DNA of 64,000 bases from NCBI RefSeq assembly GCF_046119375.1, contig NW_027362765.1:146196001-146260000 (forward strand). The letters run 5' to 3'. The notes under the pieces were generated by a model. The model made no database searches. It had not been told where the DNA came from and was given only the letters and a program-made list of their open reading frames with translations. This DNA is from Phyllobates terribilis. Its lineage: Eukaryota. Below, one piece after another: positions 6,214 to 53,599 of the stretch (positions within the stretch are counted from its first letter, which is position 1; every line of letters begins with the position of its first letter). A program made the position numbers and the translations under genes.

Positions 6214-8946
6214 ATGGCTTCAGGTATGTCTTCAAGCAGATGGCTAGAAAAAAAACATGGCTGCTGGCTTCCAAAAAAAATTTCTCATCTGTCCGTAGGT
6301 TGTGACTTGATATTGCAACTCAAGTGGATGGGACTAAGCAATACCAAGCGCAATCTGTGGGCAGGGTTGGCAAATTGATGGTGGCCAATGCAGAAATGTC
6401 TGAAAGAGTTGTGGTGACATCATAATTTATTATCTCATGTTAACTTATGTTGTTCATTACCTCTGCTCCTAGGACTGTGCTCCTCGCTTGGACTGCTGCT
6501 CATCATGGGCCTACAAAGCCCTCCAGGGTTCAGCGCCTTCCCACAGATACCTCTTGCCAGTCTCCTCAATAATGCTGTAATCAGGGCACAGTACATTCAC
6601 CAGGTGGTGGCAGACACATACAGAGACTATGTAAGTACTGGACTGATTGGAATAGAACATGTATAGCAGCACTTTTATATCTGAAGGGGGTTCTCAACTG
6701 AGAAACTGACGCCATATACCATGGTGCACCTCCAATGTCCTGACTGAGGCGGTATATAAAGACTCAGACATATACTAATGCCTAGAAGGGTGGGACTGGC
6801 TACTTCAGCTTCTTATATAGATATAATGCATGCACTGTGGCTCAGTGGTTAACACTGCAGTCTTGCAGCTCTGTGGTGTCCTGGGTTCAAATCCCACCAA
6901 GGACAACATCTACAAGTAGTTTGTATTTTCTCCCCGTGTTTGGGTGGGTTTCCTCCGAGTTCTCCAGTTTCCTCCCACACTCCAAAGACATACTGATAGA
7001 GAATGTAGATTGTGAGCCCCAATGGGGACAGTGCTGATATGGGCTGTGAAGGGCTGTAGAATTAATGGTGGTATATAAGTGAGTAAAATAAATAAATATT
7101 CTGCTCCTGAGCAGCTAATATGCAGAGAAATGCTAAACAGCCCCTTTAAAGAAAATCAGGCTGTGTTGCAGTTCCTACTCAGTACCTGGGAGTAGCACCA
7201 TTACAGACAAAAAGCTGACAAGAGTTCCTGAATTTTACTTAGCTCAGTAGAAGGTCCATAAGGCCACTAGACATCAGAAATAATCAACTAAACCCATTGA
7301 TTTTGGCAGAATTGCTTGTTTTCTTAAGCATATGGGGGCCTCTTAATAACAGATATTGAGGGGAAGAAGGATCAGGCTTTTAACGTTCAAAGCTCTATCC
7401 TTTTGTTCTCAGGGAGATAAGCAGTCACCAAAAGTATCTGGCAATGGCTTTTTCCCTTTTCCCTATTGAGAACACATGCCAAGCCAACATGCACGTGTAT
7501 GGGAAGGGCAAGAACGAGTCATCCTGCCGAATGGGCATTTGGAGAAAAACTGTTGAAAATGTATGGCTGCTTCCTAATGGGCCCCAATGGTTGGCAGATT
7601 TCAAACTGGAGTCCAATATATGTAAATGTAATTACTGTAGGGTCACACAACCTTATGTTCTCCATCCGAAAAAAAGCGGTCCGATTATGCTAATCAGACT
7701 CTGATCATAGTGGGATCCGTTTTACTCGGATGTGAAGAATAAAAAAAAAACGTCTTCATCTTCTCCATTCTGTTAGTCTGTAAAAATAAGACTGCACTCA
7801 GATGTCAGATTTTTTCCACAAACCCATATACTTGAATGGCTGATTGCGATCCGATTATTGGAGGCAAATTTTACATGCTATGATTTTTTTACTTGGACCA
7901 CTCGGTCAGAGGAAAAAAATTGGAAATGTGCACAGCCGCATAGTATAGCATTGGTCCGAGTGTGATCCGATGTTTAATGGATCGCACTCAGACCGAAACT
8001 ACGGTCATGTGCATGAGCCCCATTTCTCAGATGATATTGCAAAGAACCAAACCCAACCAATATTGTGTATTGCCATGAATTATTAATCGCACTATAGCCG
8101 GCTGTCCTGTTGACTAGCTTACATCTCTCTTCCAGGAACGAACATTCATCCGTGAAGATAAGAGATACTCAAATAAAAACTCCTATGCAATGTTCTGCTA
8201 CTCAGAAACCATCCCAGCCCCAACCGATAAGGACAACACCCACCAGAAATCAGTAAGTTGGTTCCTCCGCTGTATGGGTATCTAACAGCCTGAAGGTTGT
8301 TTCGCGAGTCTATCACCATAACTACACCGCTAGCAAAACTCTTAACTAGTTTTCACTTATTACAGGATGTGGACCTTCTTCGATTCTCCCTCACACTCAT
8401 TCAGTCTTGGACGACACCGGTGCAATCGCTGAATAAACTGTTCACCAATCAAATGTTCGGGAATGCGGTCTATGAAAAACTGCGAGATCTTGAAGAAGGA
8501 TTATACGCTCTCATAAGGGTAAGATGAACCTTCACAGTACTCCCCCTGCTGGTGAGCTAGTGGTAATGCACCCATACTGCGGTTCTCGGCAGAGGCTGCT
8601 ACCCATTGAATGGAGATGTGCCACACAGCTCCATTCAATGGTCACATCCAGAGCTAATAACAGCTCAGGGTGCTGGGTCATCGATCCGATATGGATGACC
8701 TAGTCTATCCTTTTAATGATTCATCTTTTTTGCTATCACCAGGAACTAGATGATGGAAACGCCCGGACTTACGGCCTACTGACCTTCACGTATGACAAAT
8801 TTGACTCCCATCCAGACAACAACGATGATGCACGGATTAAAAACTATGGTCTCCTGTCCTGTTTCAAGAAAGACATGCACAAGGTGGAGACTTACCTAAA
8901 AGTGATGAAGTGTCGACGGTTTGTGGAGAGCAACTGCATGGTGTAA
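6214..8946 (+). CDS. GH1: Growth hormone (somatotropin) precursor, 213 aa; join(6214..6223,6473..6630,8136..8252,8366..8518,8743..8946)
   Basis: All four introns are GT-AG and the frame is continuous. Translation: [25 protein letters not shown]|[90 protein letters not shown]...[21 protein letters not shown]...[35 protein letters not shown]. It has a signal peptide, the four canonical Cys and the tetrapod 5-exon layout. Confidence 0.98.
6832..7097 (+). mobile_element. tRNA-derived SINE (V-SINE type) in GH intron 2
   Basis: A-box TGGCTCAGTGG (6838), B-box GGTTCAAATCC (6884), central GTTTGTATTTTCTCCCCGTGTTTGGGTGGGTTTCCTCC domain, L2-like 3' tail and an AAAT end. Confidence 0.8.
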
Positions 8947-9127
8947 ATGAATGCTACAAGTGGCTGCCCTCTTACAAGAAGCCCAGAAACCTGCTGCATT
9001 TTATCATCAGCCGCTTGGAGAAAATCAGAATGGTTAATGTAATGCTACTATCATACTTCCTGACCAAAGAATATGTGTTTCTAATGTATTTTGCCTAGTC
9101 TCTTAAATGTATTGTATATTGTAAAAT

Positions 9128-10673: not shown

Positions 10674-13600
10674 TGTGGACTTTCCTCATTGATGATGGGT
10701 TGGAAAAATGCGCCGCATGTCAGTTTCCGCAGGTGATCCGCAGGTGCACTGGGACGCATAGTGGACATGGGATTTCTAGAAATCCCATCCACTATACTGT
10801 AACATCTGGCCATAAACACGCAGCCTCAAACCCGCAGAATTTCCTGATCATTGGCATATACACCAAGGGATTTTATAAGTGATTTTCTGGGAAAAACATT
10901 AAACCCCATCACCCCAGGGCCATTTTCCGTTTTCATTTTTGTCCTCCCCTTCTTCCAAGAGCCATAAGTTTTTAAAATTTCCATCAATATAGCTTTATGA
11001 GGGCTTTTTTTGTGGGACGAGTTGTCATTCAAAAGTACACCATTGATTTTACCATATAAAGTACTGGAAAATGGAAAAAAAAAAAATTCAAGTCCGGTGA
11101 ACTTGCAAAAGTTCAATTCCACAATTGTTTTTTTATTTACGATGTTCACTATATGGTAAAACGGACCTGGCAATATGATTCTCCAGGTCAGTACTATTAC
11201 GGAGATACCAAACATGTATAGGTTTTTTTCATTTAAGTGGTGAACATTTTTTGGTGAAATTTGTATGAAAAAACATTTTTGCTTTTGTTGCCATTTTCCG
11301 AGACCCATAGCATTTCCATTTTTCGGGATCTGGGCCTGGGTGAGGGCTTATTTTTTTAGTAAACAGCATCGCATTTAACAGCACCTAGTTCCACTTTAGG
11401 AAATCACACGGAGCTCTCCTAGTCTGGGACGTAGAAGCACAAAATTCAAACAAAGAAGATTCCTCCAGGGATGACAGGTTATTAAAAACTAGAAAAAAAA
11501 TAGTCTTTATTTACTAATGTTAAAAATAGGTAAATTCTCTGGTCACCATGAGATCTTCAGAAAAAAACACACTCAACCGACGCATTTCTTAAACTGAATC
11601 TCTCCAAAACTGAACTCCTTGAGTTTCTCCCCTCTACTAACCTAGCCTTAATCATCGTTAAGGCTTTTAGCTGAAACGCGTCGGTTGTATGTGTTTTTTC
11701 TGGATATCTCATGGTGACGAGTGCATTTATCTATTTTTAACATTGGTATAATGAAGATCAATGAAATCATGATCTCTTATTAACACCTGCCACGAGCCGG
11801 CATTCACAGGAGTATTGTAATGACAGGCACGGGGGTCATTAGCAGACCCCAGGCTGTCATGACAACGAATTGGCGCCCTGCAATCACATCATGGGCGCAC
11901 CGATGGGAGCGTGGAATGACCTGCGAACCTGTTAAATCTTTCAGTCAGAGATTGACAGCAGGATTTAACAGGTTAACAGCCACAGGCGGAGCACCGCTCC
12001 TCCCACGGCTGTTAAAGGCATATGATGGCTGACTAAATCATGTGTCGACAAAGCCATCATGTGTCGACAAAGATGTGGGCTCAGCATGCGAGCCCGCATT
12101 AAAATCAGGGGTCACGACATATGACGAAAATACGCTATATCTCATATGTCGTGAAGGGGTTAATGGGGATTCCCAAGAAAATAAATTTCCCCAGTCAGCT
12201 TGCATTAGTTAATAATATTAAGCGTTACTTACACAACAAGGCTTAGGCAATGACTTTTTTTGTGGCTGCCCATTTTCGTTTTTGACAACCTGCAGTCATT
12301 ACATCATGATTACAGTGCATGTGACTGCTGCAGACAATCACTGGGCTCAGTGGTCTTGTGTCTACTACCTTGGCATCAATATTGTGCCCATTAATTGGTT
12401 GCAGCAGTCACTGGGATACTGAAGGACAAGGTGATTCCATACCTGAATGAGTCTTTGCAGTTCTTCCTCTGTTAGGCAGTCTACAGTATCATCTTCACCA
12501 GCAACATATTCCACAGCAACCTTACCACTGTCTGTATTGGAAGGAAGACACATACAACTATCAAGAAGTCCCCTAGGGCAGATCAGAATTGTCGTGGAGT
12601 AATTTACTTTAATGGGCTTAATAGCCAGGAAATTCCTGCATGCAAGTCCTAATTGGCCAACACTCGAGATGCAGCCCACATTATTAGTATATTGCGCATT
12701 CACCTCTTTGTTGCTTTAGAGGATGATTAGAGGCCGAAGACCCTAGAGTTACTGTCACTAAAGACTGACAAGATAAAAGTAATTGGACCCCCCTTAATTA
12801 TATAGGTTAGGAATATGCCATAAATTTCTTTAGCGAGACCCTTTAATGTTACAGGATTATTTAATATTATGTAAGGTTATATAAAACAGTCTCCAATAAC
12901 CATTACCAAAAACCACCAGCAGGAGCTTCTGGAAAGCGTTAGACAGAGCCTTTTGCTGGGAAAACTTCTGTACTTTCTCGGTCTTTGATATAAATACCAT
13001 TGGATCTGGGAAGAAAATAAAACAAGACATGGACATATAATAGCAGTAGAAAAAAAAACTACCATGTACACCTGCACATCATAAGTGCTGTCACACGGTC
13101 ATTTATTGTACAGGTCCTATAGTCCTGCATCATTATTGCACTATATGTATGGGCTCATATAATGGTCAGTGGCACTTTATATCCCAGTGCTATGCTCCTC
13201 TTCCTCCGGCCCTGCACAGGTATAAAAACAAATTACCAGTTTACATAGTACCTCCCATTGCCCCAGGACATGTTCCCTCCATAGTAATACAAAAAGTGCA
13301 ACGATCACGTTGTGATAACAGCATTAAATTAAAATATCTCATAATATCAATGAAGTCATAATGCATAAGTAAAGCATTACAGGGGTAGTCCAGCAATAAC
13401 AAAACTGCAGAGATATGATAACATAATAAAATAACCAAAAACCACCTGTCAAGTCCCCTGTTCCAGCAGCGATAATATTACATATATCGCTACATGAACG
13501 CTGCAGCCAATCACTAGCCTCAGCTTTGATACTGGCATATGCAGCACAGGACCTCTCAGGCCAGTGATTATTCACGGGACCATTGTAAACAATGTTCAGC

Positions 13601-16600
13601 AGCAGGTACCACTGAAGCCGCAGGAATCGAGCGGCAGGTAATGTGAAAGGTGGATATGGCTATTTTATCATGCTATCATATTGTTGGCTATTTTATGAAA
13701 TTTCCTAAACTCTCAGACAATTCCTTTAATCTCAGCCTTGGAAATGTGAAAAAAATGGTTTCTATATAGATGTACAATCACAGTTCTCATTAGGAGTCCT
13801 CACCGTTCTGCATGTCGATGCTTTCTTCTACGACTCCGACTCCTCTGCTGCAAACTCCGTGGTAGGGAAGGGTCACCTGCACAACACACAGGTATCGTAG
13901 CTTTGATGGTTCTTGTAGTTCTGATTCCTCCTCTGGATCATGATCCAAACCAGTTATATTCTCCATCTAAAGGAAAATATACATATGTATAATCAGGAAT
14001 ACTTGTACAACCCCTGGCAAAAATTATGGAATCACCGGGCTCGGAGGATGTTCATTCAGTTGTTTAAGGTTGTTGAAAAAAAGCAGATCACAATCATGGT
14101 ACAAAACTAAAGTCATTTCAAATGGCAACTTTAGGGCTTTAAGAAACACTAAAAGAAATAAAGTTTAAAAATGTGGTACTCAGTAAGGGTAATTTTTTTT
14201 CAGACCACGCAGAGTGAAACAATTATGGACTCACTCAATTCTGAGGAAAAAATTATGGAATCACCCTGTACATTTTCATTTCCATAACTAACACCTGCAT
14301 CAAATTAGATCTGCTCGTTAGTCTGCATATAGTCTGGAGAGCTGTTGCACCAAGTGGACTGACATGAATCATGACTCCAACATGAGAGATGTCAATTGAA
14401 ACAAAGGAGAGGATTATCAAACTCTTAAAATAAGGTAAATCATCACGCAATGTGGCAAAAGATGTTGGTTCTTCACAGTCAGCTGTGTCTAAAATCTGGA
14501 CCAAATACAAACAACATGGGAAGGTTGTTAAAGGCACAGTTCGGTCACAGACATTGACTCCAGTTTCCTCCCATTCATTCCTCATTTGTTTTGTTGTGCA
14601 TTTCCTGTTTTCTAGACATATTGCTTTAAGTTTCCAGTCTTGACACTTTGATGTCTTCCTTGGTCTACCAGTATGTTTGCCTTTAACAACCTTCCCATGT
14701 TGTTTGTATTTGGTCCAGATTTTAGACACAGCTGACTGTGAAGAACCAACATCTTTTGCAACATTGCGTGATGATTTACCTTCTTTTAAGAGTTTGATAA
14801 TCCTCTCCTTTGTTTCAATTGACATCTCTCATGTTGGAGTCATGATTCATGTCAGTCCACTTGGTGCAACAGCTCTCCAGACTATATGCAGACTAACGAG
14901 CAGATCTAATTTGATGCAGGTGTTAGTTTTGGAAATGAAAATTTACAGGGTGATTCCATAATTTTTTCCTCAGAACTGAGTGAGTCCATAATTGTTTCAC
15001 TCTGCGTGGTCTGAAAAAAAATTACCCTTACTGAGTACCACATTTTTAATCTTGATTTCTTTTAGTGATTCTTAAAGCCCTAAAGTTGCCATTTGAAATG
15101 ACTTTAGTTTTGTGCCATGTCTGTGATCTGCTTTTTTTCAACAACATTAACAACTGAATGAACATCCTCCGAGCCCATAATTTTTGCCAGGGGTTGTACA
15201 TCTGGGGCCTAGGAAAGCAGGACAACAACCCTGTGGATCTATAGAAATAGTGGGGTTTAGGCATAGTATAGGTGTGGTCCACATCGAAGCCTCTCTATAG
15301 ACATATGCCACATACAGCATGCATATACACAATTTTGGAGCCCCCCCCCCCATATATTATTGCCTTCATGGCCACATAGTACATTAAAGGGACTGTCTGG
15401 GAATTTATGAATAAAATATTGGCAATTACTCACAGCAATTATCCTTTTGGACCAGCCATTAAAGCCAAGGTAATAGTTAGCCAGTTCCTGACATTTGTGG
15501 CTGTACAGCTCTAGAGACTTGTATGGAAATCCTTTCTGCTTGACACATATTTGTACCTAGGTACAAGGAAAACAAGATAAAAAGTTGAGTAACTTTGTAT
15601 ATACATTACTTATTTTGTGCTGATCCTGTGTTACATCCCGAATTACACTCCAGAGCTGCAATCACTAATCTGTTGGTGGAAACACATTGTACACATATTT
15701 ATATTACTTTTTTCCTGTACTGCTTCTGTTTCATAGCCTGAATTATACTCCAGAGCAGTACTCACTATTCTCCTGGTGGAGTCACTGTGTAAGTATATAA
15801 CATTAGTTATCTCCTCCTAGACCTGATTTACAGTCTGTATTATAATCCACAGCTGAACTCACTATTCTGCTGGTGGAGTCACTGTGTATATACATTATTT
15901 AAAGTGTACAGACCATGAGTTACATCCGATATTACACTCCAGAGCTGCACTCATTATTCTGCTGGTGAAGTCACTGCGTACATACATTGCATGACTTATG
16001 CTGTATTGATCCTGAGTTACAGTCCAGCTCATCGTTATTGGCACCCATAAAGTTTAAGTAGATAATGTGAAATATCTCCTGAAAAAAATGAATCAAGTGA
16101 AACAGTTTTTTTTGTATAGAGCGCTCATGTTAAATAGAAAAGAGCAAATGATAAACAATAATTGAAAACCAAAAACAATGGGAGGGAAAAATAGAAAAAC
16201 CTAAAGCTTGCGGTGTCACTGGTTTTGGCACCCTTTACATTAATTTAGTATGGAAACACATTTTGACTCACCTGTGGTAAATCACAAAAGAGATTCATCT
16301 GTGATTAATTGTCGATGTCCATGTGACATGAATTAGCCAATGAATGATGACTTCAGTGTTTTAAAAAGCCACATGGTAGGCCCTATTCCTTTGTCACAAT
16401 GGTGAAGACAAAGGAGCTGTCTGAGGACATCAGAACTGCTATTAATAGCAAACACAAGATTTACAAAGGGTATAAGACCATCTTCAAAGACATTGGTATC
16501 CCAGTTGCAACAGTGCGCAATGTTATTTAGAAGTCTACAAAGCATGGAACCATCAAGAACCTCCCTGGACGTGGGGGAAAGAGGAAAACTGACAAGAGAT

Positions 16601-19600
16601 GTCTTCGAAGGTTGGTGCGAATGGTGGAAAAAACACCACGTCAAACATCCAAAGACCTGAAGGCCACCCTGGAACAGTCTGAGGTCATGGTTTTAACAAG
16701 TACCATACGCCGCACACTAAACCAAGCAGAGCTTTATGGGCGAAGGCCAAGGAAAAGACATTGCTGAAGAAAAGACATAAAAATGAACAACTGATCTTTG
16801 CCAAAAAGTACCTTGACAAACCACAATCTTTCTGGGGAAATGTCCTATGGACAGATGAAACAAAAATAGAGCTTTTTGGCAATGCAAAGCAACAGTTTGT
16901 TTACAGATGGTGCAATGAAGCTTATAAGAACACCTTACCAACAGTTAAGCATAGTGGAGAATCCATAATATTGTGGGGTTGCCTTGACCGTACCACAGGA
17001 ATCATGAAATCAGAGAATTATCAAGGGATTTTAGAGCGAAATGTCCTACCCAGTGTAAGAAAACTTTGTTTGAGTCGAAGATCATGGGTCCTCCAGCAAG
17101 ACAATGACCCAAAGCACACATCCAAAAGTACACAGGAATGGTTGAAAAATAAAAAATGCACTGTTTTAAAATGGCCAGCAATGAGTCCTGACCTCAATCC
17201 CATTGAAAATCTTTGGGGTGAGCTGAAATCTGCCATTGGGAAAAGAACCCTGTAAACATTCAAGAACTCAAACAAACTACAAAGGAAGAGTGGGAGAAAA
17301 TTCCAGCTGAGAAGTGCAAGAAGCTTATAGATAGCTACAAGAAATGTATGGAGGCTGTCAGCAATGCCAAAGGGTGTGCAACCAAGTATTAATTAGGGCT
17401 GCTATTATTGCTGCACTTGCTGTTTATTCTGTTTCATCTTTGAAATTGCAACATGGAAGTTGAAAAACAATGTTTTATTGTTGTATTACTTTGGACCAGT
17501 AATTAAAAAATCATGAAGATATAACTTTGGTACTTTCCATTTATTTCTGAAGATATTGCACAGTCTATGAAAAAAATGAAGGGGTGAAAATAATGGTGAG
17601 CATCCTGTATTATACTCCAGAGCTGCACGCACTATTCCGCTGGTGGAGTCACTCTGTAACTATATGACATTAGTTATCTTCTCTTAGACCTGATTTACAG
17701 TCTGTATTATAATCCCGAGCTGAACTCACTATTCTGCTGGTGGAGTCACTGTCTATACATACGTTACTTAAAGTGTACAGATCATGAGTTACATCCGATA
17801 TTACACTCCAGAGCTGCACTCACTATTCAGCTGGTGAAATCACTGCGTACATACACTACATGACTAATCCTGTACTGATCCGGAGTTACAGCCTGTATTA
17901 TACTCCAGTGCTGCACACACTTTTCTGCAGAAAGAGTCACTTTGTCAGTATATAACATTAGCCATCTTCTCCTGGACCCGAGTGAAAGGCTTTATGATAC
18001 TCTAGAGCTGCATTAACTATTTTGCAGGCCTCAATGCTGAATTCCTGGGAACTTGGGGTCTGCACTGTACTAATTACAGTGATTTGATTCTGAGATATGA
18101 AAACTTTACAGCAAACACTCAGCAGTAATGTGAGATTCTAAAAACTGGCTTTCTATCTGCACCCTAGGAGTTTAGCTAAGGGACTGTTCATATGTGCAGT
18201 TTCATCTGTTTAGAGTATTAAAAAAAAACATTAAAAAAAAATGGACCCAGTTACTATCGGTTTTTGTTGGCCAAACAATAAAGTTGGGCAGAATACATTT
18301 TTTTAACCAGCTAAAAAACGGATTGCAGTCAAAAGAAAGATATTTTATGACATTTCCTTCCTCATTCAAATGAGTGGATCCTGCACTGGATCATTTCTGC
18401 TTTTGTCATCACAAAATGGATCCAAAAAGGAAAATAAACTACTGAATATGTGAACAAAGTTTTAGCTGCGGAAAGTGTTTGCCAACAAGCTTACTGACTG
18501 TTTCCAATGACTCTCAGCAGAATAATGAGCGCAGATATGATACTGGCTGTGACTTTACACATGCTTGATGAAGGTCAGACTGTAACCCGCTGTCATCTCA
18601 ATTACCTTTACAGGGGTGTCCTGGAAGAGATTCTTCTTGTCACACGATGCCTGTGCTCTCTTGGCACTTTGGGATGAGAAGTATTTGATGACAGCATAGT
18701 ACCCAGGCTCTGCCACGCCAGCATTTGGGAAAAGTTTCAGGGAGTACAGAGGTCCAAACTGAGAAAACACTTCTTGCAGAGAGCACTACAAAGAGAGAAA
18801 TGTGTGAGAGCAGGTCACTCCAAAATAAAGGAACATGATGAACAAAACCGAAACTGTGATGTGGACCTGGGGGCAGAGCATGACACAAGGGGTCACAGCA
18901 CACATCATACTCTGCCCCTGGGGTCCTGCAATGGGCACAACACAAACGCCACACATGCTTCTACAGATGCCTTGTGATTATGGTATTAAAGGGAACCTGT
19001 CATGTTGTACATGCAGCCTGATCTGTTCCCAGCATGGTAAAGGGAAGAAGCTGAGCAGTGGGATTTATGGGTTTAGAGAAAAAGATTCAGTAGAACTTGT
19101 ATTTTCTTCATTAAAATCCCTGGTGTTTGTATGTATATGAGTCCAGTGTGCGGTGCTACTCAGTGATTGACAGTTTTCCCTGTATAACTGCATGCAGAGA
19201 TATCTGTCAATCACTGAGTAGTTCCGCCCACTGGACTCATATACATACAAACACCAAGGATTTTAATGAAGAAAATACAAATTCTACTGAATCTTTTCCC
19301 CTAAACCCATATATCCTACTGCTCAGCTTCTTCCTTTTACCATGCTGGGAACAGATCAGGCTGCATGTACAACATGACAGGTTCCCTTTAATACCATCAT
19401 CACAAGGCATCCGTAGGAGCATGCTCTGCGTTTGTGTTGTGCTCATTGCAGGACCCCAGGGGCAGAGTATGATGTGTGCTGTGACCCCTTGGGATTTTAA
19501 TGAATAAGATTCTAGTTTTACTGAAATATCATTTTTACCCCGGAGAGTGGTCAGCAAATGAATACTTTTATACACACGGATGAGCCATAGCATTAGAGAC

Positions 19601-21746
19601 CACTGACCAATGCAGTGATTTTCTTGTGACAATAGCACCCATCAGGGGTGGGAGATATGAGACAGCAGATGATCCAGATGTTCCTACTGGAAGCACGAAA
19701 AATGGGCAAGGAGGAAATTGAGCCGCTGAGCAAAATGTGATGGCCAGACAACTGGGTCAGAGCATCTCCAAAAAGGCAAGTCTTGTGGGTGTTAGTATCT
19801 ACCAAATGAGGTCCAAGGCAGGACAACTGGTGACACCCAAGGCTTATAGGTCTGTGAGGGGGTGAAGGCTAAATAAACCTGTCTGTCTGATTACAAAGAA
19901 GAGATACCATAGAACAAATTGCTGAAAACTTAGGTCATGTGCTTGCGGAGTTTTTTAAGGAATCTTTTGAAGTGGGTCTGCTTCAAAAACGCCAGAAAAA
20001 AAAAAAAAAAAAAAAAAATCGCTAAAAAATTGTTTGAAAGAGACTCTTCCTGTTCATTTCTATATGTTGTTCATATGTTCAATCTTATCAGCGTTTTTTT
20101 TATTTTTGTAATTATTATTCAAAGTCTGAAAAATGCCTGGTAAAAAAAAAAGAAAATAATTGCTTTGAAGCCTTTCATGATGTAATCTGTTTTACACCGG
20201 GCACCATCCAATCAAAAGGCTGAAAAAAAAAAAATTGTAAAAAAACACTTAAGGTGGAAAAAAAAACACTCCGAAGATGCTTCAGCAAATGAAAAACTGC
20301 GCAAAAACTCCCCAAAGAAGGAGTGTTCCGTAAAGCAATTTCCATTAAAAATGATGTTTTTTGACTAGGTGAGGTCTTGTCCCCAAATCTCAATTCGATC
20401 ATAGCTCTGTGGGATGTGTCCGATCCATGGAGGCCGCACCTGACAACTTACAGGACATAAAGGATCTGCTGCTTACATCTTGGTGCCAGATAGCACAGGG
20501 CATCTTCAGAGATCTTGTGGGATCCAAGGCTCCATAGGTCAGAGAGATGGCTGCAGGAGGACCTACACAATATTAGGCAGGTGGCGTTACTGTTATGGTT
20601 GATCGGTGCTTTCATGTCACAGATCCTGTTTCTGGTCTCTACCCTCCATTATGACCAGTGATAGACAAAAGCCTTTAATGTCCTACTGACTTTCATCACG
20701 TTACCAACAACAGAGGTGAGTCTACAGGCCCATTTTATGGTTTCGCAGACGGCTTATGCACAGCCATATGGTACCTCTGAGAAGTGTATTCTCCCCCAGA
20801 AAACATGCTTTGAGGGCAGAATGCCTGCGTAGTGCCACAGCACTGAATGCCACCTGAATTGGAAAAAGTGTCACCGGCCCTGATAACTATGGCAATGGCG
20901 GCAGGCCGTGATCTGCTATAGGGCCTTTTATTTCGGGGGTGCAGCGCACAGCGGCTGTGATATCCCCCTATAGATACAGCAGAAATCAGAGGATCTATAT
21001 GTGCGCTCATGCCTGCTCTGTTCCCAGAAGGTGCCTTCTGTTATACACAGCTGACGCCCATCGGAAACTGCTGCAATTGGTGCCAGCTTTCTTGGCAGTT
21101 TAACCTCTTAGATGCCATGAAGAAGTGACCACAACATCTAAGCAGTTAGAATGGTGGGAGGGGCTTCTGCCTCCCCTTATTGGCCCCAGGATATGATTGT
21201 GGGAACCTGCTGGATTGTTAATGGCTGCTCCGCACCGACACTATGAGGGCCAATGACTTCTATATATCCCCCTGCCGGTGAACAAGCGGAAAAGGAGGGG
21301 GACTAATGCAAACCCCACCACAAGGTGCCCATTTTCAGGGTGTTCCCTAGAGTTCACTAAATGTTCCAGTTTTCCATTATTTATACACATGCACTGGCTA
21401 ATTAGCACGTTTAGGCCTTCGCTATGAGGCTATTACTAGTCTATGTAAGCCTCATTCAGTACATGGGCCGTTAATTTGTCACTATAAAGCTTTATTTATA
21501 CGAGGAAGCTGACAATTTCCAAATATATTGCAAGTACAGTGCATCCCAAGCAAGGTAATACGTGGAAGCAAACAATGCGCATGCGCAAGGGAGACCCCGC
21601 CCACGTCGGCACGCGCACCTTCTGCAAAAAACGAAGAAGAGACTCACATAAATAACTCCTTCCGGTAGCTGTGCTGTGATGTTCCATACAAACACGATTT
21701 TATTACTCTCTACAGGAATCGTGAACGACAAAACCTCGGCTTCCAT
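10370..21746 (-). CDS. RDM1: RAD52 motif-containing protein 1, 283 aa; complement(join(10370..10468,12443..12531,12907..13005,13804..13966,15434..15556,18606..18785,21648..21746))
   Basis: Seven exons with GT-AG boundaries and consistent phases (99, 180, 123, 163, 99, 89, 99 nt). Translation includes [22 protein letters not shown], the [34 protein letters not shown], the RAD52-like motif [35 protein letters not shown] and SGKVAVEY...EEELQRLIQ, colinear with vertebrate RDM1. The true ATG is 21746; the ORF track used the upstream GTG. Confidence 0.96.
10903..12159. mobile_element. TTAA-flanked piggyBac-like non-autonomous element in the last RDM1 intron
   Basis: TTAA-ACCCCATCAC...GTGAAGGGG-TTAA termini; no ORF. 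Confidence 0.65.
14008..15196. mobile_element. Head-to-head palindromic (5'-5') Tc1 derivative
   Basis: TA-CAACCCCTGGCAAAAATTATGG...ATAATTTTTGCCAGGGGTTG-TA. Arms 14008-14536 and 14678-15196 are near-perfect reverse complements. Each carries the transposase 5' end ([14 protein letters not shown]...); there is no DDE domain. Confidence 0.92.
15600..16019. repeat. ~90-bp tandem satellite, left block
   Basis: Repeated TATACTCCAGAGCTGCACTCACTATTCTGCTGGTGGAGTCACTGTG...GATCCTGAGTTACA units. Confidence 0.85.
16020..17607 (+). mobile_element. Decayed Tc1 (DD34E) transposon in RDM1 intron 2
   Basis: TA-flanked with degenerate TIRs. Transposase remnant 16399-17392 ([12 protein letters not shown]..., [21 protein letters not shown]; 34 residues between D and E) contains stops and frameshifts. 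Confidence 0.9.
17608..18020. repeat. ~90-bp tandem satellite, right block
   Basis: The same units resume immediately after the Tc1. Confidence 0.85.
18990..19387. mobile_element. Palindromic T2/Kolobok-type MITE
   Basis: TTAA-AGGGAACCTGTCA...TGACAGGTTCCCT-TTAA; the arms pair over almost the whole length. Confidence 0.88.
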
Positions 21747-21900
21747 CACTCGTTAGTGTGAGACTCGTACGAGCCGCGAATTTAACTTAGACACGCCCCT
21801 TTTCAACTTTGTAAGCGGATCACGTGACGCAAGGAAGCGGCGCATCATCAATGACGTTATCACATAGACTTTAGCGGCCATATTTGTTTTGGGCAGTGTG
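21576..21900 (-). promoter_or_regulatory. RDM1 CpG-rich promoter and first-intron elements
   Basis: Local CpG enrichment. Perfect NRF1-type palindrome TGCGCATGCGCA at 21576-21587 (intron 1). E2F-like TTCGCGG on the minus strand near 21775, E-box TCACGTGA near 21820, YY1-like GCCATATT near 21876. Confidence 0.6.
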
Positions 21901-24020
21901 GCTATGTCGCGGCCTTTGCGCCCTGGTTTGGACACTTGTCTTTGCAGATTACTCAGCTGGTGAATCTCTATGTGAGCGGAATATATCAGCTTTTTACAGT
22001 AATAATGTTGGAATAGGTTTGGTGACAGTCATATATAATAGGGCGATGTTCACACTTGCAGCATGTGTGGCTGGTAATGCTGTGTTCACATTGGCACATT
22101 CTCTCCAAAACAACACAAATCGCCATGGACACCCACCACTTATAATCACCATCATTTCATTTGTATTTTTGCAGTGAGAATGGCAGTATTCACGTTGTGA
22201 CATTCCCGAGAGTCTAAGGCCATGTTCACACCGCGTTCTAGGGTGCACGGCCGTTCCTGAAATAATCACTCCATAAGCGGCTTACAGACTCTGCCTATGC
22301 ATTGCTATTGTAAATTCACTTTGCTGTCCACATGCTCAGTCTCTTGAGCGATTTTCTTCTGCTTCTGAAGAATGCCTGGTAGGAAAATAGTGTCTGTGAC
22401 TTCTCTGAGACATCTCCTGATAGGAAAAGCTCCCGCCCAGACTCTGCCCAAGCGCTGCAAAATAGGCATCAGGAAAAAGACTGCGCCTGGGGTGGTCCGA
22501 CATACAAAGTACTTCTCATCCTGAATCCTTCTATAGCTAATGACATTATATAAACTATTTTCTAATATACTTGAATTAAAAATTCCCTCTAGCTGGTTTT
22601 CTTTTATTTACTACTTCCTATTTTGATAACACTTTCCCAGTGCATGGTGGGAAACTCAAACAAAGCATCATCAGGGGGCGCCACTGCCTAAGCCTCTGCC
22701 CCTTCCCTGAAATTAAGCATCATCAGTAATCTTGGTTTCAGGGGCTGAGCTAATCCCTGTGGGATGTGCACAATGACAGTGCGCTCTTGCCGGCTCAGAT
22801 CAGCAGTAATGTGACGGTAGCAGAGCGCACTGTTGGGCCATAACCCCACTGTCAGTATTTTTTCTCACGAGTGTGAGCCAAAACCAGGAGTGGGTGATAA
22901 ATGCAGAATTGGTGACTTGTTTCTATTATACCTTTTCTCTGATTGTTCCTCATCTGGTTTTGGCTCCAACTCCTGAGAAAAAATACTGACCAACTACTGA
23001 TAGTGGGGCCGTGGCCTTAATGTGTGTTCTATGACTACCTGGCGTGAGGAGACCAGTGATGATATTGGTCACCTATCCTGACAATAGATCATCAATATCA
23101 AATCTCTGGAGAGCCCTTTTAAAGGGAACCGGATAGTTAATACATGCTGCCCGATCCTCTGTATCATCTCAGCCAGGTATGTTAGATTCTGAAACGCTAC
23201 GACATTTCAGAGAAAAAAATACTTTAAATCCACCGGGGACTGAGCCGCACTGGAGACTCGTCAAAAAGGCTGGTACCTGGCAGTTTCACCCCACCAGCTC
23301 CCCTTGAGTAACAGGTATGTGTGTGTGTAAGAAGAGACCTGTCAATCATTGCCAGCAGGCAAGGAGAAGCTGCCATGGACCCACCTGTCCAACTAGTCTC
23401 CCGTGCAAATGAATCGGTGTGTGCATGTCAGCGTGCTTCCACGCTGACATGTCTGTTTTTTATCTGCTGCACAGGTCGCAAAACATCGTAGAGTTAGTTC
23501 TGTTCCCAAGCGCCGGGTGCTGAACACTGCCCTCATCATTGTTCCCTGCCGGTGTTGCAATCAGCACCAGCAGGGGAAAATGTTGAGAGTAGTATTCTGC
23601 TCCCGCAGTGTCCAACTGGTAAAATCCTTAGGACAAATGACTAAGTGTCCCCCGCTGTATTCCATGCAATCCCTCACGCCAAGGAGCCAAAAAAATTACT
23701 CCTGCAGCAAGCGGGCCCCGGACCACCACTGCACTCAGCAAGCGGTGTCCTGTCACTCACTGAGCTCAGCGCAGCTCCGGGGCTCGCTTGCTGCAGCGTA
23801 TCATTCTCCCCGGCGTGAGCAGGGGACACTGATGAGGGCAGCGTTCAGCACCCAGCGCTTGGGAACAGCGCTAACTGTACATGGATTCCCAAGCGCCGTT
23901 ACTTGTGCTCCTGATGCGGCACAATGTTGTCACACTTGTGCCATACAGGTGCACACAGACATCTCCGATACTGTTTTTTCCAGTACCGGAAATATGAGGA
24001 CGTGTGCAAGAGGCCTTAAA

Positions 24021-50138: not shown

Positions 50139-51575
50139 TTAAACAATGAGACACTGCATAAATTAAAGTTTTACATCAGCAAGGGAAGGATCCCACAAAT
50201 TAGGCCTTTTATGGGTTAATTTCATTGGTAGACCAAGGTATTAAAATATTGTTCTGAATTTTGGCTAACTGTTTATCTGATCTGTTACCAAAACTAGTAG
50301 GACCACACCAAGTAGGTTTTGTAAAATGGTGATCAGCTGTGACTAATAAATAGACAATGTTAGACTATGTTCATATGTCCCGTAGTTATTTCCCACTTTG
50401 GATCTGTTTTGGGATGAGAAAAATTAAAATAAAATGATCAAGTACAGGATCCATTCATTTAAATAGGGACAGAAATGTCTGACTGCAGTCTAACTGCAAT
50501 CCATCTTTTTAGCTGGATCAATAAAACAGTCTACATAACTTTTCTTTCTGACTAAATAAATGCACTTAAATTTCTCCTGGTTTCCTGGCTCCATCCACCG
50601 ATGATCTCCGGTCTCAGTACTGGTATTCCCAGCAGTGCAGAAAAACACCTACTCCTTATTATTCATTCTCTCCCCGAGGTTCATTATAAAGACGAAAGAA
50701 ATCAAGGGTATCAAAGTCAGAAAAAGCAAAATGAAATTAACGACGATATGTGAAAATTTTTGGCATCTCCGCAGGACCAGCTGAAGTGTTAGAGATTCTT
50801 GAATACTATGGATCCTTTTCAATATATAAAATCAATACAGTATATCAAAATATCATTGACTCTTTTTTTGGCAAATCATCCAGGCAGGCAATGATTTGTA
50901 AAGTGGAAATCATAACTAACATATTTAGGAGTTAAATAGGGCTGTGTCCTTCTTTTATATATAACTTTAACCTGTGATAGAAAAGATTGTGAAAGAACAA
51001 GGATGTACCATCCTTCGGGGGCTGTACAAATAACACGCTATCTCCACCCACAAAGTACATCCTGATGCTGGCACTGATATCAGAACGTAATCTTTCATTG
51101 CACGCGCCTCAGCGTTCAGTAGTGAACATGGCGTGCGTGTGCTCACAGATCAAGAATAAATTAATGGGCCGGCTTCCAGCAAAATACAGCTGCATTCTCC
51201 GGAATCTGCTAGGGGGTTGGATAAAAGGTCATTGAGGCCACAGGCCTGAGGTTCCCCATCCCTGGCTTATAGGAAGCTGGATTTGCCCGAAACAGATGGA
51301 GGCTCCAATGGTTAGGTGCTACAACACGGTCACAATATTTAGGCATATTGCAGACTGAATTTGTGGTACCAACAACTAATCCAACTTAGCATTAGACAAA
51401 GGAATTTGCAGTTCCATAAGATTTTAAAGCTTTGCTACATTTGAAATATGGCGATCTTCCCAAAGAAATCAAGAGTAGTGTCTTATTAACTCCTTTACCT
51501 CCGAGGGTGGTTTGCACGTTAATGGTTTAGCAATTTTCAAAATTTGAATTTTTATGCACTTAAAGCAGAGAGATA

Positions 51576-53206
51576 CAGTACAGACCAAAAGTTTGGACAC
51601 ACCTTCTCATTTCAAGATTTTTCTGTATTTTCTTGACTATGAAAATTGTACATTCACACTGAAGGCATCAAAACTATGAATTAACACATGTGGAATTATA
51701 TACTTAACATAAAAGTGAGAAACAACTGAAAATATGTCTTATATTCTAGGTTCTTCAAAGTAGCCACCTTTTGCTTTGATGACTGCTTTGCACACTCTTG
51801 GCATTCTCTTGATGAGCTTCAAGAGGTAGTCACCGGAAATGGTCTTCCAACAATCTTGAAGGAGTTCCCAGAGATGCTTAGCACTTGTTGGCCCTTTTGC
51901 CTTCACTCTGCGGTCCAGCTCACCCCAAACCATCTCGATTGGGTTCAGGTCTGGTGACTGTGGAGGCCAGGTCATCTGGCGTAGCCCCCCATAACTCTCC
52001 ATCTTGGTCAAATAGCCCTTACACAGCCTGGAGGTGTGTTTGGGGTCATTGTCCTGTTGAAAAATAAATGATGGTCCAACTAAACGCAAACTGAATGGAA
52101 TAGCATGCTGCTGCAAGATGCTGTGGTAGCCATGCTGGTTCAGTATGCCTTCAATTTTGAATAAATCCCCAACAGTGTCACCAGCAAAGCACCCCCACAC
52201 CATCACACCTCCTCCTCCATGCTTCACGGTGGGAACCAGGCATGTAGAGTCCATCCGTTCACCTTTTCTGCGTCGCACAAAGACACGGTGGTTGGAACCA
52301 AAGATCTCAAATTTGGACTCATCAGACCAAAGCACAGATTTCCACTGGTCTAATGTCCATTCCTTGTGTTCTTTAGCCCAAACAAGTCTCTTCTGCTTGT
52401 TGCCTGTCCTTAGCAGTGGTTTCCTAGCAGCTATTTTACCATGAAGGCCTGCTGCACAAAGTCTCCTCTTAACAGTTGTTGAAGAGATGTGTCTGCTGCT
52501 AGAACTCTGTGTGGCATTGACCTGGTCTCTAATCTGAGCTGCTGTTAACCTGCGATTTCTGAGGCTGGTGACTCGGATAAACTTATCCTCAGAATCAGAG
52601 GTGACTCTTGGTCTTCCTTTCCTGGGGCGGTCCTCATGTGAGCCAGTTTCTTTGTAGCGCTTGATGGTTTTTGAAACTACACTTGGGGACACTTTCAAAG
52701 TTTTCCCTATTTTTCGGACTGACTGACCTTCATTTCTTAAAATAATGATGGCTACTCGTTTTTCTTTACTTAGAATTTGTATTATGGCAAGAAAGAAAGC
52801 AGCTAACAGTCTATTCAGTAGGACTATCAGCTGTGTATCCACCAGACTTCTGCACAACACAACTGATGGTCCCAACCCCATTTACAAGGCAAGAAATCCC
52901 ACTTATTAAACCTGACAGGGCACACCTGTGAAGTGAAAACCATTTCCGGTGACTACCTCTTGAAGCTCATCAAGAGAATGCCAAGAGTGTGCTAAGCAGT
53001 CATCAAAGCAAAAGGTGGCTACTTTGAAGGACCTAGAATATAAGACATATTTTCAGTTGTTTCACACTTTTTTGTTAAGTATATAATTCCACATGTGTTA
53101 ATTCATAGTTTTGATGCCTTCAGTGTGAATGTACAATTTTCATAGTCATGAAAATACAGAAAAATCTTTAAATTAGAAGGTGTGTCCAAACTTTTGGTCT
53201 GTACTG
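51576..53206 (-). mobile_element. Full-length Tc1-superfamily DD38E (Intruder-type) transposon with 268-bp TIRs
   Basis: TA-CAGTACAGACCAAAAGTTTGGACAC...GTGTCCAAACTTTTGGTCTGTACTG-TA. TIRs are 51576-51843 and 52939-53206. The ORF has [14 protein letters not shown] and NPIEMVW with 38 residues between the second D and E. Confidence 0.93.
51739..52881 (-). CDS. Uninterrupted DD38E transposase ORF (380 aa) with a non-native N-terminus
   Basis: Stop-free ORF with an HTH region (SKEKRVAIIILRNEGQSVRKIGKTLKVS), GRPR and an intact DDE triad. The first ~37 aa come from upstream sequence plus an inverted segment (see findings). Confidence 0.75.
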   Translation of the reverse strand: MGLGPSVVLCRSLVDTQLIVLLNRLLAAFFLAIIQILSKEKRVAIIILRNEGQSVRKIGKTLKVSPSVVSKTIKRYKETGSHEDRPRKGRPRVTSDSEDKFIRVTSLRNRRLTAAQIRDQVNATQSSSSRHISSTTVKRRLCAAGLHGKIAARKPLLRTGNKQKRLVWAKEHKEWTLDQWKSVLWSDESKFEIFGSNHRVFVRRRKGERMDSTCLVPTVKHGGGGVMVWGCFAGDTVGDLFKIEGILNQHGYHSILQQHAIPFSLRLVGPSFIFQQDNDPKHTSRLCKGYLTKMESYGGLRQMTWPPQSPDLNPIEMVWGELDRRVKAKGPTSAKHLWELLQDCWKTISGDYLLKLIKRMPRVCKAVIKAKGGYFEEPRI

Positions 53207-53599
53207 TATGTCACACAAAATAGTTAATAAATAACATTTCCCACATGTCTACTTTATATCAGCACAATTTTGAAACCAACATTTTTTTTTATTAGGGAGC
53301 TATAAGGGTGAAAAGATGACCAGCGATTTCTCATTTTTACAACAAAATTTACAAAACCATTTTGTTAGGGACCACATCACATTTGAAGTCACTTTTGGGT
53401 ATTTTCTGTAATGTAGACCCCTCAAAGTGACACCATTCTAAAAACTGCACCCCTCAAGGTGCTTAAAACCACATTCAAGAACTTTATTAACCCTTCACGT
53501 GCTTCACAGGAATTTTTGGAATGTGGAAGAAAAAAATTAACATTTAACTTTTTTCACAAAAATGTTACTTTAGACCCAATTTTTTTTTATTTTCACAGA

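Follow-up and report, generated by a model that had tools for sequence, protein, structure and literature searches.

The window analyzed here is a 64,000-nt stretch of the Phyllobates terribilis genome, and all positions below are counted from its first letter. It contains the gene RDM1, on the minus strand, and a fold-back derivative of a Tc1 transposon within intron 3 of this gene. The exons of RDM1 were searched one by one against domain profiles, not as a joined spliced model. The coding part of exon 1 lies at 21648–21746 (minus strand). Exon 2 (18606–18785, minus strand) encodes the RRM domain (PF00076, E 1.5e-6) and is also covered by pieces of cDNA contigs. Exon 3 (15434–15556, minus strand; 123 nt, 41 aa) matched positions 2–25 of PF25517 with an E value of 1.3e-10 and carries the Rad52 motif. 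Exon 4 (13804–13966, minus strand; 163 nt) matched positions 31–79 of the same profile, DSRM_RDM1 (E 2e-10), and is present in pieces of cDNA contigs from the RNA-like sequencing runs X10 and X9. Human RDM1 has seven exons, of which exon 3 likewise encodes 41 aa and exon 4 can be left out by alternative splicing, which shifts the frame (PMC2095821). Intron 3 of the frog gene (13967–15433, minus strand) is 1467 nt long, with the donor GTGAGT starting at 15433 and the acceptor AG at 13968–13967, and the cDNA contigs end exactly at 13966. These exon-by-exon domain matches confirm the location that a preliminary description of the locus had assigned to the element, namely RDM1 intron 3, about 41 nt from the exon 4 acceptor.

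The element occupies 14008–15196 (1189 bp) and is composed of two left-end (5′) halves of a Tc1, joined head to head. It is bordered by the TA target-site duplication, which was read directly from the sequence at 14006–14007 and is mirrored at 15197–15198. It makes up 81% of intron 3, leaving 41 nt to the acceptor and 237 nt to the donor. Without the element and one TA, the intron would be 276 nt long. A branch-site candidate, CUGAU, with its A 26 nt upstream of exon 4, and the pyrimidine tract both lie within the 41 host nucleotides. The left arm (14008–14536, plus strand; 529 nt) is a forward Tc1 left end with the outer and inner direct repeats, the 5′ untranslated region (UTR), and canonical transposase codons 1–55. 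The right arm (14678–15196, minus strand; 519 nt) is a second left end in inverted orientation, from which 9 nt of the outer direct repeat are missing, as is a single nt more internally. Between the arms lie 141 nt (14537–14677, minus strand) that continue the transposase gene of the right copy: they encode the GRPRK motif and the first half of the second helix-turn-helix (HTH), and end with ...VNVCDRT. The head-to-head arrangement, the arm lengths, and the TA flanks given in the preliminary description were thus borne out by sequence and alignment. Its spacer had the right length, but is not foreign, being simply the next 141 nt of the right copy's gene. Similarly, the outer terminal inverted repeats (TIRs), described there as intact, are intact only on the left.

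The motif repeated within the termini, AAAAATTATGGAATCACC, is present in the left arm at 14019–14036 and 14248–14265, with a degenerate copy at 14218–14240, and this arrangement is mirrored in the right arm. In the right outer repeat, the first 22 nt are present, whereas the next 9 nt, which are part of this presumed transposase-binding motif, are missing. When the right arm was reverse-complemented and aligned with the left arm, the two were 97.7% identical over 521 aligned positions (Kimura two-parameter distance 0.023). The 12 mismatches comprised 3 transitions and 9 transversions, and the 10 gap columns comprised one 9-nt gap and one 1-nt gap. Counted with the TA, a 672-nt left-end fragment is joined to a 531-nt left-end fragment, and these reach into the transposase gene by 103 and 55 canonical codons, respectively. 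The junction at 14536|14537 has no microhomology. Beyond each breakpoint, canonical copies carry other letters, as judged from the consensus of loose-end contigs and from the right arm itself. After the breakpoint on the VNVCDRT side, canonical copies read ...VRNRLKEMGF (consensus of loose-end contigs and protein relatives). An Rfam search of 13000–22000 matched no family, and a text search of the literature found no mention of the terminal repeat sequence.

The identity of the parent family was established from proteins and from one full-length relative. A 190-aa open reading frame (ORF) at 14253–14825 (minus strand) runs in the RDM1 sense direction. Its residues 1–97 match the N-termini of Tc1 transposases from many fishes and frogs, with the best match in Lates calcarifer (E 7.7e-49, 94% identity). 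Among frogs, the closest proteins come from dendrobatids, and the Ranitomeya imitator match is 89% identical. The same N-terminus is 80%–90% identical to copies in many teleosts besides L. calcarifer, and these high identities fit the published horizontal transfer of Tc1 elements between fishes and frogs. The longer protein relatives start with MAPTREMS..., and two of them (P0028 and P0005) have the DDE domain, in which 34 residues separate the second D from the E. A full-length relative from another organism (L001:1625–3198; 1574 bp, 71% identical) shares its 24 terminal nucleotides, at both ends, with the element, and in it, too, the motif that recurs in the frog arms has an outer and an inner copy. 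On the basis of these termini, repeated motifs, and DDE-bearing relatives, the family is an inverted repeat/direct repeat (IR/DR)-type DD34E Tc1. The DDE catalytic domain itself is not in the element, which is therefore non-autonomous. Two R. imitator gene models (P0002 and P0006) join a KRAB or C2H2 zinc-finger part to the HTH of this Tc1. These are probably gene models running through an intronic Tc1, the alternative being a domesticated fusion.

Both ends of the fold-back are left ends. A segment of ~67 nt is present in the left end of L001 and not in its right end, and both frog arms carry this left-specific segment. At mismatch columns 88, 89, and 95 of the arm alignment, the right arm has the state of the L001 left end, and the L001 right end agrees at 88 and 95 only. 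We also considered whether the outer part of the right arm is a true right end, which would make this arm chimeric. This was rejected because the left-specific segment is present. The 9-nt gap was likewise rejected as a natural feature of right ends, because no part of the motif is missing from the L001 right end.

The coding sequence in the element is decayed. The canonical transposase ORF (MAPTRE...) begins 6 codons upstream of the 190-aa ORF, and a TGA stands at canonical codon 5 in both arms. The left arm has an additional TAA at 14431, where the right arm has GAA. Moreover, both arms have A at 14374, whereas every contig placed there has G. The shared stop and the shared A indicate that the two arms derive from one source copy that was already broken. 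The 190-aa ORF consists of a truncated paired-like DNA-binding domain (residues 1–97) followed by 93 residues (98–190) that are the antisense of the left arm, and it has decayed via CpG-type changes. Its second HTH (RED) is cut off at position 35 of the 72 positions of the profile, and the right copy differs from its relatives by R-to-C and R-to-W changes. The matches of the ORF to the Pfam profiles HTH_SB, HTH_32, and HTH_Tnp_Tc3_2 were all under the curated cut-offs, because the domain is truncated. The ORF with a DNA-binding part of ~97 aa and no DDE domain, noted in the preliminary description, does exist, but it starts downstream of the canonical start and lacks the rest of its second HTH. 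The TAA that it noted in the other arm is confirmed, and the TGA at codon 5 is common to both arms. Separately, when the 5′ UTR and first codons of the family are read in antisense, no stop occurs for ~94 codons in either arm (14677–14961, plus strand, and 14253–14534, minus strand), and no protein match to that part was recognised.

The read evidence consists of Logan contigs from two DNA samples and two RNA-like runs, each pair coming from two studies. In each RNA-like run, one contig (X10 record 9, 791 nt; X9 record 25, 780 nt) contains exon 2 and exon 4 with a gap of exactly 120 letters between them. Exon 3 and intron 2 begin with the same three letters (GTA), and 123 − 3 = 120. This exact spacing means that exons 2, 3, and 4 are joined, that the acceptor at 13966/13967 is in use, and that the mRNA contains no letters of the element. 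Intron 3 is thus removed normally, and exon 4 is included, in the assembled transcripts. Because the flanking exons are spliced together, the intron must be transcribed. Among the contigs of the RNA-like runs, none was seen crossing from the flank into the element.

The family to which the element belongs is very abundant. In the DNA run X1, 29,453 contigs were placed, and their summed depth was 3–5 × 10^5 on the arms compared with ~20 on the flanks, a ratio of ~10^4 that is not to be read as a copy number. In the RNA-like runs, the summed depth of the family was in the thousands, compared with ~7–38 for the RDM1 exons. DNA contigs from two samples of two studies lead from the unique left flank 20–24 nt into the element. 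The right side is also entered in X1, and the left side only in X5. This shows that the insertion is real and occurs in more than one data set. The huge repetition of the family makes these contigs end ~20 nt into the element. In the assembly, the element sits within a gap-free contig. Poison-frog genomes are known to contain Tc1 families with tens of thousands of copies, a history of fish–frog horizontal transfer, and TcMar-Tc1 sequences that account for ~7% of reads (PMC6278860, PMC12208295).

Taken together, the element is likely to be a fold-back derivative that is dead and non-autonomous, stems from a very abundant family of IR/DR-type DD34E Tc1 elements, and is lodged in intron 3 of the frog RDM1. 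Its most likely origin is a gap repair that was interrupted after excision of a Tc1. In this scheme, one nascent strand would have switched template within the terminal repeat common to both ends and copied the left end inwards for 672 nt, while the other nascent strand copied 531 nt. The two would then have been joined bluntly, without microhomology. The chances appear about even that this took place at the RDM1 site or, instead, elsewhere with subsequent transposition of the whole unit. The element is now probably immobile, because 9 nt have been lost from its right outer repeat.

In its present position, the element would be transcribed passively within the RDM1 pre-mRNA, and its RNA is expected to snap into one stem of ~520 bp with a loop of 141 nt. 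The predicted fold of the intron RNA is such a single long stem (−988.7 kcal/mol), so the earlier argument that the RDM1 pre-mRNA must hold a duplex of ~520 bp is sound. The stem would bring the two host parts of the intron (237 nt and 41 nt) side by side. After splicing, the excised hairpin probably shares the fate of other long duplexes in the nucleus, either ADAR editing or degradation, and this would be a by-product and not a function. In a 5.5-kb stretch, 24–25 A>G letter changes were counted in the DNA runs and the same number, 24–25, in the RNA-like runs, a comparison made at the level of the family with contigs, which collapse the family and drop rare variants. By this count, A>G changes are not in excess in the RNA-like runs.

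Several observations weigh against this interpretation. The ratio of 3 transitions to 9 transversions between the arms is odd for plain neutral decay, being the opposite of the usual bias. It could reflect error-prone repair synthesis when the element was formed, mistakes made in polishing a high-copy repeat, or chance. A single relative, which is only 71% identical and comes from another organism, underlies the left-end assignment. The internal fold-back junction is backed by the assembly and not by short-read contigs, which stop inside the element. Finally, the transcript contigs are able to show the main transcript, but not a minor isoform that lacks exon 4.

The most credible alternative is that the unit was formed elsewhere and mobilised in trans as a MITE-like fold-back subfamily, of which many copies with the identical junction would exist. 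We regard this as possible but somewhat doubtful. It agrees with the precise TA and the terminal repeat at both ends, and with the derivation of both ends from the same parent end, as indicated by the left-specific segment of ~67 nt. Two left ends can form a competent substrate in Sleeping Beauty-type elements. On the other hand, no second copy of the fold-back element was found in the window. A search of the 190-aa junction ORF against a large protein database, in which this frog's DNA is poorly covered, gave no junction-spanning match, and the matches obtained cover at most 55% of its length. An exact look-up of the ORF returned no record in collections that barely cover this genome. The junction 20-mer had one match among metagenome contigs, where the frog is again barely covered. 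This match (L002) lies in a bacterial ribosomal-protein operon and was rejected as chance. Given how poorly the frog is represented, these three are weak tests of a subfamily.

Far less probable is a role in splicing, in which the 520-bp stem, with its base 11 nt from the likely branch point, would alter the inclusion of exon 4. Skipping of this 163-nt exon would shift the frame. In favor of such a role, 41 nt separate the element from the acceptor, the tract of pyrimidines is short, and exon 4 of human RDM1 is alternative, with skipping that causes a frameshift (PMC2095821). However, the human RDM1 isoform that skips exon 4 is a normal one and arises with no such element present (PMC2095821). 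The branch-site candidate and the pyrimidine tract are untouched host sequence, and self-pairing takes the insert out of the effective length of the intron. Most directly, in two RNA-like runs from two studies, exon 4 is present, with exact exon 3–4 junctions and no letters of the element. The preliminary description had suggested an effect on exon 4 splicing and a check for exon 4 skipping. In the contigs of both runs exon 4 is included, which lends the suggestion no support, although contigs are blind to a minor isoform.

A host-driven silencer similar to Mu killer, as also suggested in the preliminary description, is slightly more doubtful still. In that case, the RDM1 hairpin would be cut into small RNAs against the TIRs, 5′ UTR, and first 55 codons of the family, and would help to silence it in the germline. 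The structural parallel is close, as Mu killer also has the same terminal repeat twice, together with part of the 5′ transposase gene in inverted form, and is reached by read-through from a gene next to it (PMC3440606). Judging from the spliced flanking exons, the intron is transcribed, and a long stem is predicted. In addition, Xenopus embryos make 23–29-nt siteRNAs from intronic transposon remnants (PMC3875865), and the cloned cDNA of human RDM1 came from libraries of testis and brain (PMC2095821). Against this, the hairpin is intronic and nuclear, and the siteRNAs, rather than being hairpin products, formed clusters that were mostly single-stranded and antisense to the transposon (PMC3875865). 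The family already exists in a huge number of repeats and appears in the RNA-like runs at summed depths of thousands, compared with the ~7–38 of the RDM1 exons. Its copies look old and decayed, with the shared stop and CpG-type changes. Ordinary IR/DR Tc1 copies have their own inverted ends of ~250–280 nt, and this locus would add little.

This last point is illustrated by other inverted repeats of the window, where five more were found with arms of at least 100 nt and complementarity of at least 91%. Long inverted repeats thus occur about once per 10 kb in the window. One of these is a normal IR/DR copy, a 1643-bp Tc1 of a different family at 51570–53212, whose 278-nt inverted ends are 97% complementary. 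It has an uninterrupted 380-aa ORF with DD34E-type motifs and therefore may be intact and autonomous. Another fold-back lies within RDM1 itself, at 18886–19491 in intron 1, 100 nt upstream of the exon 2 acceptor. It has 300-nt arms that are 93% complementary and a 6-nt loop, and it is not a high-copy element, because the DNA depth there is near single copy. Given the abundance of the family and the frequency of inverted repeats, one extra hairpin is unlikely to be the trigger for silencing of the family. If the locus did act in this way, it would represent a rare instance, in an animal, of a rearranged transposon generating its own silencer from a host promoter.

An assembly artefact, namely a fold-back produced by a palindromic chimeric long read, would explain why independent contigs do not confirm the internal junction, but is very improbable: the arms are unequal in length and differ at 12 positions and by 2 indels, the contig around the element is gap-free, and short-read contigs enter the element from its unique flanks at both ends in X1 and at the left end in X5. 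The proposal that the 190-aa ORF yields a KP-like, DNA-binding-only repressor that blocks the transposase can be practically dismissed. In its favor, no stop interrupts the ORF in the RDM1 sense direction, and homology to the transposase N-terminus covers residues 1–97. However, its start is an internal Met behind the TGA at canonical codon 5, its second HTH is cut, R-to-C and R-to-W changes have occurred relative to its relatives, 93 junk residues follow, and it is intronic, inside the stem, and past the stop at 15257 of the retained-intron frame (ORF 15257–15433), which ends before reaching the element.

Two further features of the surroundings were observed. Intron 2 of RDM1 contains a decayed Tc1 (16100–17550, plus strand), which is flanked by extremely high-depth repeats at 15708–16075 and 17548–17915. 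The summed depth of these bordering repeats reaches up to 2.7 × 10^6 in the DNA runs. Growth hormone exons lie at 8300–8950 (plus strand), ~5 kb from the 3′ end of RDM1 and on the opposite strand.

The element in RDM1 intron 3 is an ordinary representative of a known class of defective Tc1/mariner derivatives, and the functional readings are unproven and mostly unlikely. Its value is descriptive, as it offers a clean example of how a same-end Tc1 fold-back originates, with breakpoints that can be read from the sequence. It also shows that an intron tolerates a 1.2-kb insert ending 41 nt from the acceptor, with no visible harm. One reason for this may be that self-pairing removes the insert from the effective length of the intron. 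As Tc1 elements make up several percent of the DNA of the genome (PMC12208295, PMC6278860), such structures are expected to be common.

Among known systems, the element most resembles fold-back Tc1/mariner derivatives with both ends from one side, which have already been described as Goblin in Aedes and as Tc7/CeleTc1-type elements in C. elegans (PMC3814204). Like Goblin, it is a non-autonomous Tc1/mariner derivative with inverted subterminal regions of unequal length that come from the same parent end. The formation of Goblin was likewise explained by gap repair with a template switch in the terminal repeat and subsequent joining of the ends (PMC3814204). In contrast to Goblin, it is the left (5′) end that is duplicated here, with the duplication reaching into the coding region. 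Furthermore, the element is not miniature at 1189 bp, its junction is without microhomology, and it is known here from one locus.

With Mu killer, the element shares an inverted partial duplication of the transposase-proximal terminal repeat and a 5′ part of the transposase gene, which in the frog would be read from a host promoter nearby, as it is in Mu killer (PMC3440606). The definition of Mu killer, however, is a genetic one, namely a silencer of MuDR that is dominant and heritable and has small RNAs (PMC3440606), whereas the element is likened to it by structure. The target family in the frog, unlike that of Mu killer, is already decayed and enormously repeated. To our knowledge, the RNA-directed DNA methylation machinery of plants is absent in vertebrates.

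The Xenopus siteRNA loci resemble the element in being transposon remnants in introns of frog protein-coding genes (PMC3875865). Their definition rests on repressed host genes and on sequenced 23–29-nt clusters, most of which are antisense to the transposon (PMC3875865), and the part that the element shares is the intronic remnant. RDM1, in contrast to the host genes of siteRNA loci, is expressed and spliced in the runs examined. Finally, inverted Alu pairs, which are intronic ADAR substrates, share with the element a long and nearly perfect intramolecular duplex in nuclear pre-mRNA. In RDM1, this duplex arises from one fold-back element and not from two separate insertions, and the counts of letter changes, compared at the level of the whole family, are alike in the DNA and the RNA-like runs.

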